Below are positions 21,058 through 63,597 of a DNA stretch of 64,000 nt, in pieces. The stretch lies in the sequence record OZ196285.1; one strand, given 5' to 3'. The notes under the pieces are model-generated. The model was not told the origin of the DNA, did no database searches, and saw only the letters and a list, made by a program, of their open reading frames with translations. Position numbers and translations under genes: made by a program. How positions within the stretch are numbered: the first letter of the stretch is position 1; every line of letters starts with the position of its first letter.

Positions 21058-21469
21058 TACAACCCAACTCTTGTTTGAATAGTTTAGTAGCAAGACCACC
21101 ATTAATGACTTTGCCTGTTGCGTTGAGTGCTTCGATTAGACCACGCATACCGCTCATGTTATCAACACCAGAATCAGCGATATAATCAGTAACAAACGTT
21201 TTCATTTCAGCTTCTGGCATAACAACTGGTAGCAAGTCTTCAACGACTTTGATTTCAGTTTCAAGCTTAGTGATTTGATCAGCATCTTTGATGTAATCAA
21301 GCATACCGCGATTAGCTTCGACGATTGCAGTGATTGATTTGATACATGCCTTGTTGTCGTGATTTTGCTTGCGGTCGAGATCTGCGATTACAACAGACAG
21401 GACAGAAGACGCGATGTTGTCGCGTGCTTTACGTGCAGCCAAGTGAGCTGCTTTGATTTTAGTGATCAT
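21032..21469 (-). CDS. GatB/YqeY-like protein
   Basis: IKAAHLAARKARD...LETEIKVVEDLLP...MRGLIEAL pattern. Confidence 0.65.
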   Translation of the reverse strand: MITKIKAAHLAARKARDNIASSVLSVVIADLDRKQNHDNKACIKSITAIVEANRGMLDYIKDADQITKLETEIKVVEDLLPVVMPEAEMKTFVTDYIADSGVDNMSGMRGLIEALNATGKVINGGLATKLFKQELGCNGIRRYAQ

Positions 21470-21879
21470 ACTATTCCACTCTCAATTTTTCTATTATCAA
21501 TTACGTGTTTAATTGTGAAGCCCATTTGACTAACGCCTTTAAGAGCTTCTTCGATGAAAGACAAAACATCTTTCATGTGTTGAAACGTAGCAATCGCAAG
21601 TTGAAGTAATTCATCGCCTGCTAGAGCGTATTTCATTTCACTTTTCTCAACGATAAAGTCACAGACCTCATCATCGTGTTTGCCACTGTAAAACAGCCAA
21701 CGATCTTTACGACAGCGTTCCATTTTCAGTTCAGCTTTAAGTAACAGTTGTCGAGCATCAGCACGATAGCTAAGCCACTTCGAGTGAAGAACAGGAATGT
21801 TGATAGCCGCAAGTTCAATCGCAGTCGTATCGATCTTCACGTCTTCGTGATATTCAGATTTAAGTTGTTTAAGATTCAT
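21466..21879 (-). CDS. uvsY: Recombination mediator UvsY
   Basis: IPVLHSKWL, WLFYSGK, GFTIKHVIDNRK; synteny. Confidence 0.93.
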   Translation of the reverse strand: MNLKQLKSEYHEDVKIDTTAIELAAINIPVLHSKWLSYRADARQLLLKAELKMERCRKDRWLFYSGKHDDEVCDFIVEKSEMKYALAGDELLQLAIATFQHMKDVLSFIEEALKGVSQMGFTIKHVIDNRKIESGIV

Positions 21880-21899
21880 ATTTCCCCTCACGTATTTGA

Positions 21900-21928
21900 A
21901 TTATATATAAGCATCGGGTTTAGATCAA
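21900..21928 (-). promoter_or_regulatory. uvsY promoter
   Basis: TTGATC-17-TATAAT immediately downstream of the 9-nt repeat array. Confidence 0.7.
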
Positions 21929-21984
21929 CTAATATTTCTAACATTTCTAATATCACTAAGTATACTAATTCTACTAAGATGATG
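21929..21984 (-). repeat. Six TTAG direct repeats at an exact 9-nt period (copy A)
   Basis: CTAA on the + strand at 21929, 21938, 21947, 21956, 21965, 21974. Confidence 0.9.
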
Positions 21985-22010
21985 TGGAATTTTTCCGGTC
22001 CGCTAGAAAC

Positions 22011-22032
22011 AAAAAAAGCCCCGTAGGGCTTT
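22011..22032 (-). terminator. Intrinsic terminator after the tail fibre operon
   Basis: AAAGCCC-TACG-GGGC-T7 on the minus strand. Confidence 0.8.
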
Positions 22033-22034
22033 AA

Positions 22035-24713
22035 TTAAGACAAACTCATGTCCATTGCTGTGACTGTGTTCTCAAAGAAACTTGCGACTTTCACTTCAGT
22101 GACCATCGGCAAACACCATGCTGTTGTACTAGCAGATGTTGAACCCTCATCGCGATAACGTAATCTGAATTTATCAGAATCATTACGCCAACGATACACT
22201 TTAGGTGACGATGCACGATAAACTCCAACACCTTTCGATGCTAGTCTACTAGGAACATCTTCAGGGTTATGCACGCCAAAGTAATAGTTGAACTTGTCCA
22301 TAAACTCTTGGTGCTGCTCATTCGTGTACGTATAAGGCAAAATGAATCCATCTAACAAAATCCATTTATCAGTTCGTGAAGCATTATACGGTGCACCGTC
22401 AATCGAAATGTATGTGCTTGAAGCTGCTCCTGTGACTGTTACCAATGAGTCGAATATTCCATTAGTATCTCTGACACGCGAGCTTAAATCCAACGTGCCC
22501 GCGTCTTTGCTTGATGCATTCACCCATATCGACACGTAATACGCTCGTGTAGGGTCTATAGCGACCTCGTCTAGCTCGATCATCGATTCCCCTGAACCCT
22601 GAGAAGTCACAATCGCTTTCTCGGTTCCTGTGAACGTTTGATTCGCCCAATACACCGAGCCGCTATCTTGCTGTGGCATTTCGGTATCTGCATATAAGTT
22701 CGAATCTGACTTGTACGCTGATAGCCAACTAGTGTCGTCTGCTGGGTGTCCTGCATGAGGAGACATAACGATGTTATTTGCCGCTAGACCATTCAACGAC
22801 GATTGAATCGATTCATCACCCGTCGGTACTTCAAAACCAGCCTTGTACAATTGAACGTAATCAACTTCATCGTCTGTCATTGTTGCCCAAATTCCTATTG
22901 TTGTTGCACTTGGTGGCACTTGAACATAGAATTCTTGAGAACTCATCACTGCATAGTTGTATATTGCCACGTTTTGTCTACCAACTTCTTCATTGACGCT
23001 GTTGTAAAAACGAAGATTGCACGCTTTGCTGCTTTCACCTATATCACGCATAGCACGTACTTTGTAGAGTAGATATTGCCCTGCTACTACACTATTATCA
23101 GCAAGTGAAATTCGCGCATCTGTAGGCGGATTTGTTGTTTCGATAATTGGCCTACCGTAACCAGTTGCACCAATGGTCAGCCGCGATTCAAAGTTCACAT
23201 CGATTACGCTATCGCCATCAAGAACGTGGTCGAACATACATCGTTCAGACACAATCCCCAATTGCCCTGACCCGAACGCGCTGTAACTGTAGCTGTATCG
23301 ATTGAAATAATCAGCACCTCGCCATTCATATGCGTTGAATCTTGCCAACGCGTTGTCTACGTCTGCATTGCTATAGCATGAACCATTTGACACTAAGATG
23401 AAATATTCATTCGTAATCGCGCTCAGAGCAGCGACAAAGTTACCGCGTTCAGCCGATTGATTCAAACGATACGTGTTGTTAATTTCAGGTGTACCATCAG
23501 CATTGAACGTCATTAAATGCATCTTAGATGTTTCTTTTTCTGTCGTTTCGAAAATCGCCGTTTCATTTATCACACATTCTGCTGATTCGCTACTACCGTC
23601 AGCAACGCCGCGAGTGTATAAGCGAATATTGTTCGATGCACCTTCATTGAAGTGTCGAGATTCGAGTAGATTCTCATTCACGATGATTCCGACGGGCGCA
23701 TAAACCCATAGCTCAGTGACTTGAACATCTTGTCCTGGCCCTGGTTGCCCACTGCCGTTTGCACGATTTGCGCCTATAGCAAACCACCAACTCGACGAAC
23801 CGACTGACCCGTCACCTAGCGACTGATCACTAGTATTTCGCTCAATGCCCCCCCATGAACTATACGTCGAATCAATGCGAATCGCTTCGTATCCACGAAC
23901 GCCACGAACATCTGGCTCATAATCTCCCGGATAGTTCTTGATGATCGTTCTGTCAGTGATAATCGGGTTCGCAATGTATTGCTTGCCTGTTGGCGTAGGT
24001 GACGCGCTTCCGTACGTCATATACCAGTGCATTGTTGCTGCTGTGTTCAGCGTACTTGGTGTCGTGAATCGCGCATATCGACGAATCCAACGCTTGCCGT
24101 CAACAATGATGTCATTGCCAGTTTCTTCGAAAACCTCACCGGGAATTGCACCAAGTTGATGTGGGTTGTTGCTACCGTCATACCAACGCGAATGAAACAG
24201 AGGACATCCTAAATCATGATCTGATTCGTTTTCATACGCCACCCAGCAAGATAGCGTATACGTTGTATTCGCTCTCAGCCGGGTCTGTGGTGTATCGAAA
24301 CGATATTGGTCTGTCGATCCTGTGCTAGTGCGTTCAAGGATATAATTCGATGAACCGGGATTCGTCATTTCGACGATATCCCATGTTCCTACGATACTGC
24401 CGACGTTCTCTGGTTTCTCGCCGTTAGCAAAGTTAGTGCCACGAAGATATTGACCAGAGTCGTATTCTGCAAAGTTGTTTGATTGACGCCAGATGTTCGT
24501 AACGCCAACTTCAGGGTAATGTAATTTGAGCTGAAAGCGACCATCTTCACGTCTGAATTCTTCTAGCCCGTACAACGCGCTGAACTTAGCGTCAACGTCG
24601 GGATCGCTCCCTGCATTGCGTGCTTCAGCAACGGAAGCAAAGTAATTGCTTCCGGTTGAATCATGGCGAAATATCAGAAGATAATCGCCATCACGTTTAA
24701 GTCTATCGTACAT
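22035..24713 (-). CDS. 35: Long tail fibre hinge/connector-like multidomain protein
   Basis: Directly downstream of gene 34; central ILEI-like segment; N-terminal fibrinogen-like and carbohydrate-binding-like modules. Confidence 0.65.
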   Translation of the reverse strand: MYDRLKRDGDYLLIFRHDSTGSNYFASVAEARNAGSDPDVDAKFSALYGLEEFRREDGRFQLKLHYPEVGVTNIWRQSNNFAEYDSGQYLRGTNFANGEKPENVGSIVGTWDIVEMTNPGSSNYILERTSTGSTDQYRFDTPQTRLRANTTYTLSCWVAYENESDHDLGCPLFHSRWYDGSNNPHQLGAIPGEVFEETGNDIIVDGKRWIRRYARFTTPSTLNTAATMHWYMTYGSASPTPTGKQYIANPIITDRTIIKNYPGDYEPDVRGVRGYEAIRIDSTYSSWGGIERNTSDQSLGDGSVGSSSWWFAIGANRANGSGQPGPGQDVQVTELWVYAPVGIIVNENLLESRHFNEGASNNIRLYTRGVADGSSESAECVINETAIFETTEKETSKMHLMTFNADGTPEINNTYRLNQSAERGNFVAALSAITNEYFILVSNGSCYSNADVDNALARFNAYEWRGADYFNRYSYSYSAFGSGQLGIVSERCMFDHVLDGDSVIDVNFESRLTIGATGYGRPIIETTNPPTDARISLADNSVVAGQYLLYKVRAMRDIGESSKACNLRFYNSVNEEVGRQNVAIYNYAVMSSQEFYVQVPPSATTIGIWATMTDDEVDYVQLYKAGFEVPTGDESIQSSLNGLAANNIVMSPHAGHPADDTSWLSAYKSDSNLYADTEMPQQDSGSVYWANQTFTGTEKAIVTSQGSGESMIELDEVAIDPTRAYYVSIWVNASSKDAGTLDLSSRVRDTNGIFDSLVTVTGAASSTYISIDGAPYNASRTDKWILLDGFILPYTYTNEQHQEFMDKFNYYFGVHNPEDVPSRLASKGVGVYRASSPKVYRWRNDSDKFRLRYRDEGSTSASTTAWCLPMVTEVKVASFFENTVTAMDMSLS

Positions 24714-30049: not shown

Positions 30050-30644
30050 TATTTTTCGAGTCTATTGCGCTGTTAAAGCGCATATGGGTGGGAAGTACGA
30101 CATCTCCAAGTACAAACTCGGGATGAAAACACCGCAGTCAGCGTTTGAAAAGCGTAATGACAAAGTGTTTTTTGAACGGCTAGCCAAACGGCTATCATTG
30201 AACGATTGCTACAGATTACTGGTGAGTAATTTAGCAGCGAACCCAAACGCGATTTCTTATGAGATTGCGGGTGCTGACGCGCATGAATTTTGGTTGAAAC
30301 ATACCGGATTTATGGAAATTTACAGTCAACACTACAAAAATGAATTACTCACGATTTTTACTCTTATAAATAGAGAGAATAAGAAATTTAAAGACTTGTT
30401 TAGTGGTGAGGGGCACCCTGTTATAATGCAACTCGTGTTACGAAATACAATCTCAATTGAGACGTTCGTGGTACTAAACAGACTTTTAAACTTCGTCCCG
30501 GTAATCGATAAAGATTACGGTGATGACATCTTTTGGTATGAGTTTCGAACTCGCGTTTTAGCATACGATAAGTTGCTGAAAATCGATGAAAAACTTGCAA
30601 AGGAAATGTTTATTCAAGTTAAAAATCAAAGTAAAATACAATAA
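29991..30644 (+). CDS. 59: Helicase loader
   Basis: YDISKY, FEKRNDKVFFERLA, ISIETFVVL. Confidence 0.9.
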   Translation: MKRLLEVDLVLPQTWASGFSIFRVYCAVKAHMGGKYDISKYKLGMKTPQSAFEKRNDKVFFERLAKRLSLNDCYRLLVSNLAANPNAISYEIAGADAHEFWLKHTGFMEIYSQHYKNELLTIFTLINRENKKFKDLFSGEGHPVIMQLVLRNTISIETFVVLNRLLNFVPVIDKDYGDDIFWYEFRTRVLAYDKLLKIDEKLAKEMFIQVKNQSKIQ

Positions 30645-30695
30645 CACACTATACGATACTATATCACACTATAAAATACAATAGGTAATACAAAA

Positions 30696-32215: not shown

Positions 32216-32952
32216 TTTTTAAAAATAATGTGGGATGGTACGCAGGCGCAGGTTCTGTTCGTCATGACTTTTACATCAACGGCCCTATCGAAGAGCCAAG
32301 TGATTATGACGAAATGTTGCAGATTTTAAATACTGCTTCAGAGACAGACGCGATCTACCTGCACATCAATACACCCGGTGGTAACTTCGCTGCGGCATGT
32401 CAAATCTGTGATGCAATTATGCAATCAAAAGCAGGTGCGATCATTGCGTGTGCAGAAGGGGAAGTATGCAGTGCGGGTACAATGATTTTCTTAGCTTGTA
32501 GTGGATGGCACGTAAGCCCGTTTGCTACATTCATGTTCCATACGTCAAGCGGCTATCACGGTGGTAAAATGCCGGATGGATTGAAACAAGCGAAAGCGCA
32601 CGAAGAGCACTTGAACCGCGTTGCGGGTCTGCTTTACACGCCTTTCTTTGATGACGACGAAGTTCATGACATCATCAACAACAACCAGGACGTTTGGCTA
32701 ACGCCTGAAGAAGTTACTGTTCGCTTACAAGCAATGGCAGAACGATTCGAGGCTGAGTTGAAAGAAGCTGAAGCAGCAATGCAAGCAGAAGCTCAGGCAG
32801 CACTTGACGAGCAGATTGCAGAGCGCGTAGCAGCCGGTGTTGAAGCAGCATTGGCGGCCCTTGAAGCTGACGACGATCTCGACGAGATTGAAGAAGTTGA
32901 AGAAGTTGAAGAAGTTGAAGAAGTTGAAGACGACAGCAACGACAAATCATAG
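32212..32952 (+). CDS. ClpP-like serine protease with an acidic C-terminal tail
   Basis: HINTPGG, CSAGTMIFLA, FMFH, DVWLTPEE; tail contains (GAAGAAGTT)x4 at 32890-32925. Confidence 0.85.
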   Translation: MIFKNNVGWYAGAGSVRHDFYINGPIEEPSDYDEMLQILNTASETDAIYLHINTPGGNFAAACQICDAIMQSKAGAIIACAEGEVCSAGTMIFLACSGWHVSPFATFMFHTSSGYHGGKMPDGLKQAKAHEEHLNRVAGLLYTPFFDDDEVHDIINNNQDVWLTPEEVTVRLQAMAERFEAELKEAEAAMQAEAQAALDEQIAERVAAGVEAALAALEADDDLDEIEEVEEVEEVEEVEDDSNDKS

Positions 32953-63208: not shown

Positions 63209-63229
63209 AGCCCCGAAAGGGGCTTTTTT
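63209..63229 (+). terminator. Intrinsic terminator
   Basis: AGCCCC-GAAA-GGGGCT-T tract. Confidence 0.88.
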
Positions 63230-63252
63230 AGGTTTGAGGCTCGAAAATTGGG

Positions 63253-63308
63253 CATCATCTTAGTAGAATTAGTGCTCTTAGTGATATTAGAGTAATTAGG
63301 AGTATTAG
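63253..63308 (+). repeat. Six TTAG direct repeats at an exact 9-nt period (copy B)
   Basis: TTAG at 63260, 63269, 63278, 63287, 63296, 63305. Confidence 0.9.
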
Positions 63309-63337
63309 TTTAACGCACCCCGTATCTGTCATATAAT
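63309..63337 (+). promoter_or_regulatory. Promoter downstream of repeat array B
   Basis: TTTAAC-17-TATAAT. Confidence 0.65.
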
Positions 63338-63357: not shown

Positions 63358-63597
63358 ATGATAACAATCTATACAATTCCTAACTGTGACGGCTGCCGTC
63401 ACGCCATTTCCCTCTGTAAGTTCAAGAAAATTCCATTCGAAGAAATCGTCATACAGTCTCAAGCTGACATCGACAAGCTTCATATTAAACTAGGTGGAGT
63501 GCGCAACGTTCGCGTACCATTAGCGATGCATGGCGACGTTTACATCGGGCATCTGCCAGAGCTTAAACGTTACGTTGATAGCAAGCTGTATAAATAA
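63358..63597 (+). CDS. Glutaredoxin (NrdH/NrdC-like)
   Basis: IYTIPNCDGC, VP, YIG. Confidence 0.85.
   Translation: MITIYTIPNCDGCRHAISLCKFKKIPFEEIVIQSQADIDKLHIKLGGVRNVRVPLAMHGDVYIGHLPELKRYVDSKLYK
63589..63596 (+). promoter_or_regulatory. Late promoter TATAAATA
   Basis: Exact consensus upstream of gene 24. Confidence 0.8.

Follow-up and report, generated by a model that had tools for sequence, protein, structure and literature searches.

In phage T4, the replication origins oriF and oriG each span about 100 bp and combine a MotA-dependent promoter with a sequence-independent, A+T-rich unwinding element, the promoter transcript itself forming the R-loop that primes replication; T4 has at least five origins, and oriF is located at uvsY (PMC3016281). 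The element described here is a cassette of TTAG repeats that lies directly 5' of uvsY, and at several other places, in Vibrio phage F86, a T4-like Schizotequatrovirus and KVP40-like relative of T4 that forms the outgroup to the Schizotequatroviruses of oyster farms (PMC12028318). The window, i.e., the whole stretch of DNA analyzed, comprises 64,000 nucleotides of the 228,383-bp F86 record (OZ196285.1), with the same numbering as the record, to which 2 kb around the uvsY array are 100% identical. Like oriF and oriG, the cassette occupies about 100 bp with a putative recognition element at about −30 that would stand for a −35 hexamer, a putative sigma70-type −10 hexamer and a meltable A+T-rich stretch downstream, and it is present in several copies per genome. 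Unlike them, it contains no MotA box, in a phage for which the literature recognizes no MotA gene; its −30 element is a 21-bp inverted repeat, its downstream stretch is a strict 9-bp repeat, and its copies share one sequence, whereas the T4 origins share no motif. The likeness is, therefore, one of sequence architecture. On these grounds, we tentatively favor, with considerable doubt, reading the cassette as a phage-dependent promoter region with a melt-prone periodic leader, similar to T4 oriF.

Such a reading would bear on a gap in the biology of these phages. Members of the KVP40 group, such as KVP40 and nt-1, possess AsiA but no recognizable MotA, for which a functional analogue has been postulated, and the post-early transcription of the AsiA-positive, MotA-negative T4 relatives (KVP40, nt-1, and Aeh1) has been an explicit question since 2003–2010 (PMC2988021, PMC1524935). 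F86 also encodes AsiA (PF09010, 1e-34; 166309–166638). The cassette is apparently undescribed so far, no published account of it having been found in the literature on KVP40 repeats, promoters, transcriptomes, and satellites, a coverage outside which the KVP40 genome paper lies (PMC180978).

On the minus strand, from 22032 to 21900, the order is an intrinsic terminator, then GGACCGGAAAAATTCCACATCATC, then six TTAG units, a sigma70-like promoter, and uvsY (Table 1). A sequence-only reading of the window had proposed exactly this arrangement, with a strict 9-nt period, a leader ending in CATCATC, and the promoter TTGATC-17-TATAAT, and all of it was recovered from the sequence and by scans. The second copy that it reported on the opposite strand is likewise present (63209–63337, plus strand), 5' of an nrdH-like glutaredoxin gene whose KVP40 orthologue is annotated nrdH and is followed by genes 24 and 55. 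Both copies have the same layout, share an exact 21-nt block (CATCATCTTAGTAGAATTAGT), and place the first T of the last TTAG 27 nt 5' of TATAAT. Series of three or four TTAG at 9-nt spacing are confined to these two places in the 64-kb window (0 matches in 100 dinucleotide shuffles), and Tandem Repeats Finder assigns a period of 9 to each of them. A conserved peptide encoded by the array was discarded as an explanation, since the reading frames differ between the copies and the second one contains an in-frame TAA.

The TTAG units make up the 3' two-thirds of a cassette of ~76 bp that is discrete and specific to this lineage. In alignments anchored on the first TTAG (21–28 copies), the cassette opens with the 21-nt inverted repeat GAGGCGGAA-AAA-TTCCG(C/T)(A/C)TC, which the sequence-only reading had missed, followed by ATC and by 5–7 units of consensus TTAG-[T/A/G]-R-R-W-[A>T]. 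Its edges are sharp, with an information content that rises at −24 (GAGG) and falls directly past the last TTAG, and the flanks of paralogous copies are unrelated. No indel is found in any cassette copy. TTAG is present in all 128 tabulated units, the table leaving aside the last unit of every array; a degenerate box nonetheless occurs in four of the 28 copies, namely TTTG or TTCG for the sixth TTAG in the nrdH copies of KVP40 and VH7D and in the uvsY copy of KVP40, and TTAA in the third unit of the dam copy of 1.081.O. Of the 128 units, 127 have a purine at position 5. C accounts for only 20 of the 640 spacer bases, with a G:C ratio of ~7:1, which constitutes a strong strand asymmetry. A AAGCGAAGCG motif also lies 10–55 nt 5' of the cassette in ~70% of the copies, according to our own reading of the alignments.

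The sequence-only reading had implied two copies and an element specific to uvsY. A whole-genome scan instead reveals five copies in F86, and the uvsY copy is one of 5–7 dispersed cassettes per genome. Four genomes were read in detail, those of F86, KVP40, VH7D, and 1.081.O. KVP40 contains six copies spaced 26–54 kb apart, at the five F86 sites and 5' of the lipoprotein gene KVP40.0252, and VH7D has six at the same sites as KVP40. The count of at least seven in 1.081.O, including a tandem pair 5' of gene 1, is a lower bound, positions 165–204 kb being outside the scan. Five sites are orthologous across the four phages, and all copies are oriented as both of their flanking genes. Conservation in related Vibrio phages, the test by which the sequence-only reading could have failed, was obtained by blastn in 51 phages of the KVP40 group, mostly at six places per phage. 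The cassette sites are kept even though the coding DNA of the uvsY locus is just ~76–80% identical between F86 and the other phages. In IMG/VR, the matches of the plain (TTAGN5)x5 pattern were unrelated tandem repeats only, mostly from giant viruses or in coding sequence, and a leader-anchored pattern was required. The sole match in bacterial genomes, in Photobacterium indicum, was set aside as a chance occurrence without the leader, inside a Ser/Leu-rich open reading frame (ORF).

In the tandem pair of 1.081.O (MG592456.1), the cassettes stand at 207338 (−) and 207174 (−), 164 nt apart, each with its own upstream AAGCGAAGCG motif, and some copies in this genome have seven units. Two hypothetical coding sequences of F86, VPHF86_0317 (195891–196028) and VPHF86_0343 (221851–222054), overlie TTAG cassettes; since the arrays of the other phages do not encode protein, both annotations are probably artefacts.

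The promoter reading relies on the first unit and on what precedes it. Unit 1 reads TTAG-TAG(A/T)(A/T)T-TAG in all aligned copies but three from 1.081.O. The hexamer TAG(A/T)(A/T)T occurs in 24 of the 27 aligned copies from which hexamers and inverted repeats were counted, and TAnnnT, the form of a sigma70-type −10 hexamer, in 25. The inverted-repeat center is 18 nt from TAG(A/T)(A/T)T, which would put the center at ~−30 and the repeat at ~−40 to −20. A generic promoter scan also flags the TAGWAT-equivalent hexamer of the second window copy. GGAAAA is found 17 bp 5' of the −10-like hexamer and no −35 hexamer stands at the proper distance, so that a promoter in the cassette would need a factor. 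In T4, the MotA box, (a/t)(a/t)(a/t)TGCTT(t/c)A, is centered at −30 and located 11–13 bp 5' of the −10 hexamer. The −30 region of the cassette, GGCGGAAAAATTCCGC, holds no such box, and the sequence-only reading was right to see none at uvsY, where the sole TGCTTA is wrongly placed, 2 nt 5' of the TATAAT hexamer. Promoters for sigma54, sigmaE, sigma32, and sigma28 gave no match by inspection. A DnaA-trio-like reading was also rejected, as just 1–2 of the 3 triplets per unit fit W-A-R and no DnaA box was seen by inspection.

Helix stability supplies the second part of the likeness to oriF and oriG. In nearest-neighbor calculations, the 54-bp array lies at, or at most 15 nt from, the least stable window within ±500 bp in 18 of 18 copies from three genomes. 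The T4 origins have their A+T-rich unwinding element at the corresponding place, directly 3' of the promoter, which in the cassette is a putative one. Only 0.01–0.4% of windows genome-wide are less stable than the arrays. For the uvsY copy, 3 of 1001 windows within ±500 bp are less stable, the optimum being 6 nt off (0.02% in the genome), and in the second window copy no 54-bp window within ±500 bp is less stable than the array itself. When distinct regions are ranked by instability, arrays come 2nd and 5th in F86 and make up five of the first 15 in KVP40.

At one site, transcription of the array can be read from its position. At the KVP40.0252-type site, hereafter 0252-type, the start codon falls inside unit 6 in KVP40 (ATG) and VH7D (GTG), and 3 nt past unit 5 in 1.081.O. 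The array is thus certainly part of the mRNA leader there and, hence, transcribed. The Shine-Dalgarno sequence GGAG is located inside unit 5 in KVP40 and VH7D, and the cassette begins just 6 nt from the upstream stop codon, leaving no room for a further promoter; no downstream promoter was found at this site in KVP40, VH7D, or 1.081.O. This makes unsafe the argument of the sequence-only reading that the array must act as DNA because it sits between a terminator and a promoter.

From these features, we infer a promoter role, a protein that recognizes the inverted repeat, the 9-bp register, or both, and a possible origin activity. The 21-bp inverted repeat at ~−30 would replace the −35 hexamer and would be read by a phage factor acting with the AsiA-modified host polymerase. 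The −10-like TAGWAT in unit 1 would then direct a transcription start in unit 2, and the later units would constitute a C-poor, very easily melted initial transcribed region, kept in a strict 9-bp register. The cassette may also prime replication through R-loops, because its layout is that of the oriF/oriG minimal origin, an activator-dependent promoter with a downstream unwinding element.

Several observations weigh against this scheme. The strict 9-bp recurrence of TTAG is explained neither by a promoter nor by a generic unwinding element, and a protein or structure that reads the register is still needed. A good sigma70-like promoter is located 0–29 nt 3' of every copy other than the 0252-type ones, and it could drive the gene without the cassette. 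T4 has several dozen middle promoters, a number far above the 5–7 cassette copies. The three 1.081.O exceptions to TAGWWT are TTGAAT in the uvsY copy, without the key A at −11, TAATAT in the nrdH copy, and TGAAAT in the 0252-type copy. Compensatory and G-T changes in the inverted repeat are easier to reconcile with a folded single strand than with a duplex bound by protein, and further genome regions are as unstable as the arrays. Finally, no partner protein was identified among the candidates examined, a small ORF and the gene 5' of asiA.

The gene 5' of asiA (VPHF86_0270 in F86, KVP40.0294 in KVP40) is confined to this phage lineage and is 80–89% conserved; it has no Pfam or PDB match, and its AlphaFold model is unusable, with a predicted local distance difference test score (pLDDT) of 34. 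The small ORF is an unannotated one of 71 amino acids in KVP40 (NC_005083.2, 158873–159085, plus strand), with a ribbon-helix-helix-like N-terminus, located 5' of both KVP40.0294 and asiA. This ORF overlaps the GTG annotated as the start of KVP40.0294, a gene that probably begins instead at the ATG of MERAEIII. Over 34 amino acids, it shares 47% identity with a small ORF of the chromosomal island described below; neither ORF matches a Pfam family, the pattern being judged by eye. The N-terminal, ribbon-helix-helix-like part is missing from F86, where a remnant persists at 165467–165646, and no counterpart was found in the parts of 1.081.O that were read. Since F86 lost this part yet keeps its five cassettes, the ORF was dismissed as an obligatory partner.

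This ORF is nevertheless relevant to a different explanation, in which the cassette is not a promoter but a platform on duplex DNA: a cooperative filament-forming protein, for example of the ribbon-helix-helix type, would nucleate on the inverted repeat and coat the six units. The coat would thereby insulate, repress, or activate the sigma70-like promoter just 3' of it, or block read-through from the late operon 5' of it. Ribbon-helix-helix proteins bind contiguous arrays of 7–8-bp repeats, as do omega on the heptads of pSM19035, ParG on ACTC boxes at 8 bp, and MetJ on metboxes at 8 bp. The cassette resembles these arrays by its head-to-tail repeats shorter than a helical turn, its small invariant box with a variable spacer, and its proximity to promoters. 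The strict 9-bp register and the position-specific spacer preferences also fit a coat, as does the setting: an intrinsic terminator precedes four of the five F86 copies, three of these terminators ending late structural operons (genes 35, 3, and 12), and a sigma70-like promoter follows 0–29 nt further. Differences lie in the 9-bp period and in the lack of a cognate protein conserved with the array, F86 being without the only candidate. Moreover, in F86 copies 1–5 the last TTAG is separated from the nearest sigma70-like −35 hexamer downstream by 0, 0, 16, 29, and 13 nt, and helical phase varies with this distance; for the 0252-type copies, a downstream promoter is lacking altogether. Elsewhere in F86, no isolated two-unit site of the kind expected for a smaller operator is found (1.4 expected). 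We consider such a platform rather unlikely. The constant 27-nt spacing to TATAAT claimed by the sequence-only reading therefore stands for the uvsY and nrdH copies, but not for the other three (gap of 13–29 nt), and its proposal of an activator array phased to the downstream promoter is unlikely, because the fixed spacing is not general.

The low stability of the arrays could also mean that the cassette serves chiefly in replication, as an origin whose array is an unwinding element and/or a single-strand landing pad, with a hairpin that forms on opening and an R-loop primer provided by transcription, either from the cassette itself or from further 5'. The number of copies, 5–7 per genome, is comparable to the T4 origins, one copy sits at uvsY like oriF, and three of the five in F86 border on late structural operons, a feature noted for T4 origins (PMC3016281). 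The upstream GCGAAGC motif and the 9-bp stem of the inverted repeat could fold in single-stranded DNA. In the chromosomal island, the cassette is found a few hundred bases 5' of iteron-like repeats, and the island encodes a gp45-like clamp. Evenly spaced short direct repeats in non-coding DNA are also typical of iterons, as in plasmid origins and in the 12-nt repeats of T4 oriE (PMC3016281). However, the cassette repeats are contiguous 9-mers rather than spaced repeats of ~17–22 bp (or 12 nt), the copies are dispersed, and none of the five F86 copies has an initiator-like gene beside it, so that the cassette does not fit the iteron origin suggested by the sequence-only reading beyond having direct repeats. 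Its parallel with the T4 origin at uvsY holds for the architecture, i.e., a destabilized duplex at the uvsY promoter and, in a mobile element, a cassette beside iteron-like repeats, but not for specificity, as all the copies are dispersed. Against a replicative role, T4 unwinding elements require no particular sequence, a common motif is absent from the T4 origins (PMC3016281), and an origin needs neither strict co-orientation with transcription nor a copy fused to a start codon; the equally unstable regions elsewhere count here too. We consider a predominantly replicative role likewise rather unlikely.

The inverted repeat and the transcribed array of the 0252-type site raise the question of an RNA element. 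Here, an oligomeric RNA-binding protein comparable to TRAP, HutP, or gp32 would bind a 9-bp stem-loop and the unstructured, C-poor leader 3' of it, in which UAG recurs every 9 nt, and would thereby control translation, stability, or processing. TRAP and HutP recognize regularly spaced UAG or GAG triplets, which are bound by ring oligomers at a spacing of 5–7, and the autoregulation of T4 gene 32 relies on nucleation at a structured site, after which comes a repetitive leader without structure. With an imposed 9-pair stem, 85% of the cells are paired in the 27 copies. Two stem pairs swap jointly from GG/CC to CC/GG, changes on both sides occur in 8 cells, and the alternative 3' arms CATC and TCTC exchange a G-C pair and a G-A mismatch for a G-U wobble and a G-C pair. 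For pairing as for covariation, none of 500 shuffles attains the observed score, and the paired fraction drops to 35–52% in slid controls. RNA folding is better than in shuffles for three of the four copies tested (z = −2.4 to −4.3). The pairing, thus, supports a folded strand, but it would be compatible with a duplex palindrome as well, because all the sequences are related paralogues or orthologues.

In favor of this RNA element are also the strand asymmetry of the spacers and the six regular UAG of the sense strand, which recall the TRAP and HutP targets. Against it, the triplets recur at 9 nt, a competing terminator or antiterminator structure is absent, and most copies have a strong terminator 5' and an evident promoter 3', so that the main mRNA would lack the cassette. 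The stem is weakly paired in the F86 uvsY and gene 1 copies and in the nrdH copy of 1.081.O, the folding of the uvsY copy gives z = +0.9, and the covariation comes from two column pairs only, among related sequences. A search of Rfam over the window returned 0 matches at the gathering score, and over 21850–22080 only chance-level matches (E ≥ 0.28), far under the gathering scores. An RNA element is, consequently, quite unlikely in our view.

Dispersed repeats of another kind are already known in nt-1 and KVP40. These are the PeSL and PmSL, in which an intergenic, terminator-like stem-loop and a sigma70-like promoter recur (Arbiol 2010; Comeau 2014, PMC4122927). The cassette lies in the same setting, and it could be a recombination or regulatory repeat of the PeSL kind, homogenized by gene conversion and without any sequence-specific reader. 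Paralogues of one genome share spacer variants (TGATT, TGTTC, and AGAAA in 1.081.O), which suggests concerted evolution; the tandem duplication in 1.081.O and the exchange of the cassette with an unrelated element point in the same direction. Nevertheless, the cassette is an additional module of ~76 bp between the stem-loop and the promoter, unmentioned in PMC4122927, and its 5–7 copies occupy conserved sites, five of them orthologous from the F86 outgroup to KVP40, whereas PeSL sites are associated with indels (hyperplastic). In addition, TTAG is invariant, apart from the degenerate box of four copies, and the register is exact while spacers drift, which implies a selection on register that homology-driven recombination does not need. 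This explanation is, therefore, very unlikely; were the cassette only an A+T-rich spacer homogenized by recombination, the result would be an ordinary one.

The promoter reading gains from the occurrence of the cassette outside phages. Metagenome contigs (L146/L147, L149, and L150, extended as L160–L162) carry a cassette of the KVP40/VH7D type. In blastn comparisons of this island with the phage collection, the cassette itself is the sole match; the only other similarity is the weak 34-residue protein match to the KVP40 ORF mentioned above. The island cassette is located in a non-coding region of ~1.1 kb, in which it is followed by a sigma70-like promoter and a palindrome, hairpin-rich sequence, iteron-like repeats (ATACAACTACG about seven times, or TGTACGCRAAAGTGTAC about five times), and TATAAATA. 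The latter is the T4 late-promoter consensus, and it stands 5' of the first island gene in both island variants. An island wired to T4-type late transcription that also has the cassette argues that phage machinery reads the cassette.

The island encodes the Thoeris proteins ThsA (SIR2 + STALD) and ThsB, a BsuBI/Eco57I-type restriction-modification pair, a resolvase, and a 345-amino acid protein that matches the C-terminal domain of the gp45 sliding clamp (36 bits, for a Pfam cutoff of 25). The contig ends in a fragment of a carboxypeptidase gene, which suggests that the island is chromosomal, and blastn of the control region against plasmids returned no match. The island may be a satellite or a sensor of KVP40-like phages. 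F86 has a Tad2-like anti-Thoeris gene (PF11195, 6e-24), situated directly after asiA (166647–166940).

A bolder extension of the promoter reading, which we hold to be quite improbable, is that the cassette would be the missing middle-mode element of the AsiA-positive, MotA-negative T4-like phages, with a −30 inverted repeat read by a lineage-restricted factor, that an R-loop in its leader would fire 5–7 origins, and that a new family of Vibrionaceae islands would have captured it to sense or parasitize these phages. To our knowledge, no replication origin has been mapped in the KVP40 phage group. As a short, sharply bounded, and conserved target, the cassette makes both the transcription and the origin questions directly testable. 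Its presence in the island suggests that mobile elements exploit or sense broad-host-range vibriophages through it, which bears on the satellite and defense biology of marine Vibrio.

Table 1. Cassette copies of phage F86, features of the two copies in the window, and cassette regions of the island.
Feature	Position	Strand	Remarks
F86 copy 1	21977	−	5' of uvsY
F86 copy 2	63260	+	5' of the glutaredoxin gene opening the gene 55 unit
F86 copy 3	106431	+	5' of VPHF86_0165 and dam
F86 copy 4	195994	−	5' of gene 1 (deoxynucleoside monophosphate kinase)
F86 copy 5	221954	+	5' of wac
Intrinsic terminator, copy 1	22015..22032	−	3' of the gene 35-like tail-fibre hinge gene; AAAGCCCTACGGGGCTTT + T-run TTTTGTTT; 7-pair stem, terminator scan
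Leader inverted repeat, copy 1	21981..22001	−	GGACCGGAA-AAA-TTCCACATC; degenerate copy, 6/9 pairs; ATC next at 21980-21978
Six 9-nt units, copy 1	21924..21977	−	TTAGTAGAA TTAGTATAC TTAGTGATA TTAGAAATG TTAGAAATA TTAGTTGAT
Putative −10-like hexamer TAGAAT, copy 1	21968..21973	−	units 1-2; inverted-repeat center at ~−30
Sigma70-like promoter, copy 1	21900..21928	−	TTGATC-17-TATAAT; promoter scan, 10/12 matches; −35 hexamer overlaps unit 6
uvsY (UvsY-like recombination mediator)	21466..21879	−	first downstream gene; OZ196285.1 annotation; tblastn to uvsY of T4-like phages
Intrinsic terminator, copy 2	63209..63224	+	3' of VPHF86_0090; terminator scan
Leader inverted repeat, copy 2	63236..63256	+	GAGGCTCGA-AAA-TTGGGCATC; 8/9 pairs including two G-T wobbles
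Six 9-nt units, copy 2	63260..63313	+	TTAGTAGAA TTAGTGCTC TTAGTGATA TTAGAGTAA TTAGGAGTA TTAGTTTAA
Sigma70-like promoter, copy 2	63309..63337	+	TTTAAC-17-TATAAT, or TTAACG-16-TATAAT according to the scan
Glutaredoxin (nrdH-like) gene	63358..63597	+	opens a rightward unit leading to a gene 24 paralogue and gene 55 (late sigma)
Island cassette region, L150	2900-4100	−	Ga0207798_100154, JGI12290J12831_1000408, ERZ508602 NODE_373 (for the three island rows together)
Island cassette region, L147	780-1942		
Island cassette regions, L160-L162			

The window contains two further tandem repeats. Beyond gene 34, at 30636–30683, a 20-nt repeat (ATACAATAACACACTATACG) is present in 2.4 copies, where the duplex is among the least stable of the genome (ranks 11 and 15), and its position recalls T4 ori(34). 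At 32888–32930, a perfect 9-nt tandem repeat (TTGAAGAAG; 4.8 copies, 100% matches) has no sequence kinship to the TTAG units and is probably coding.

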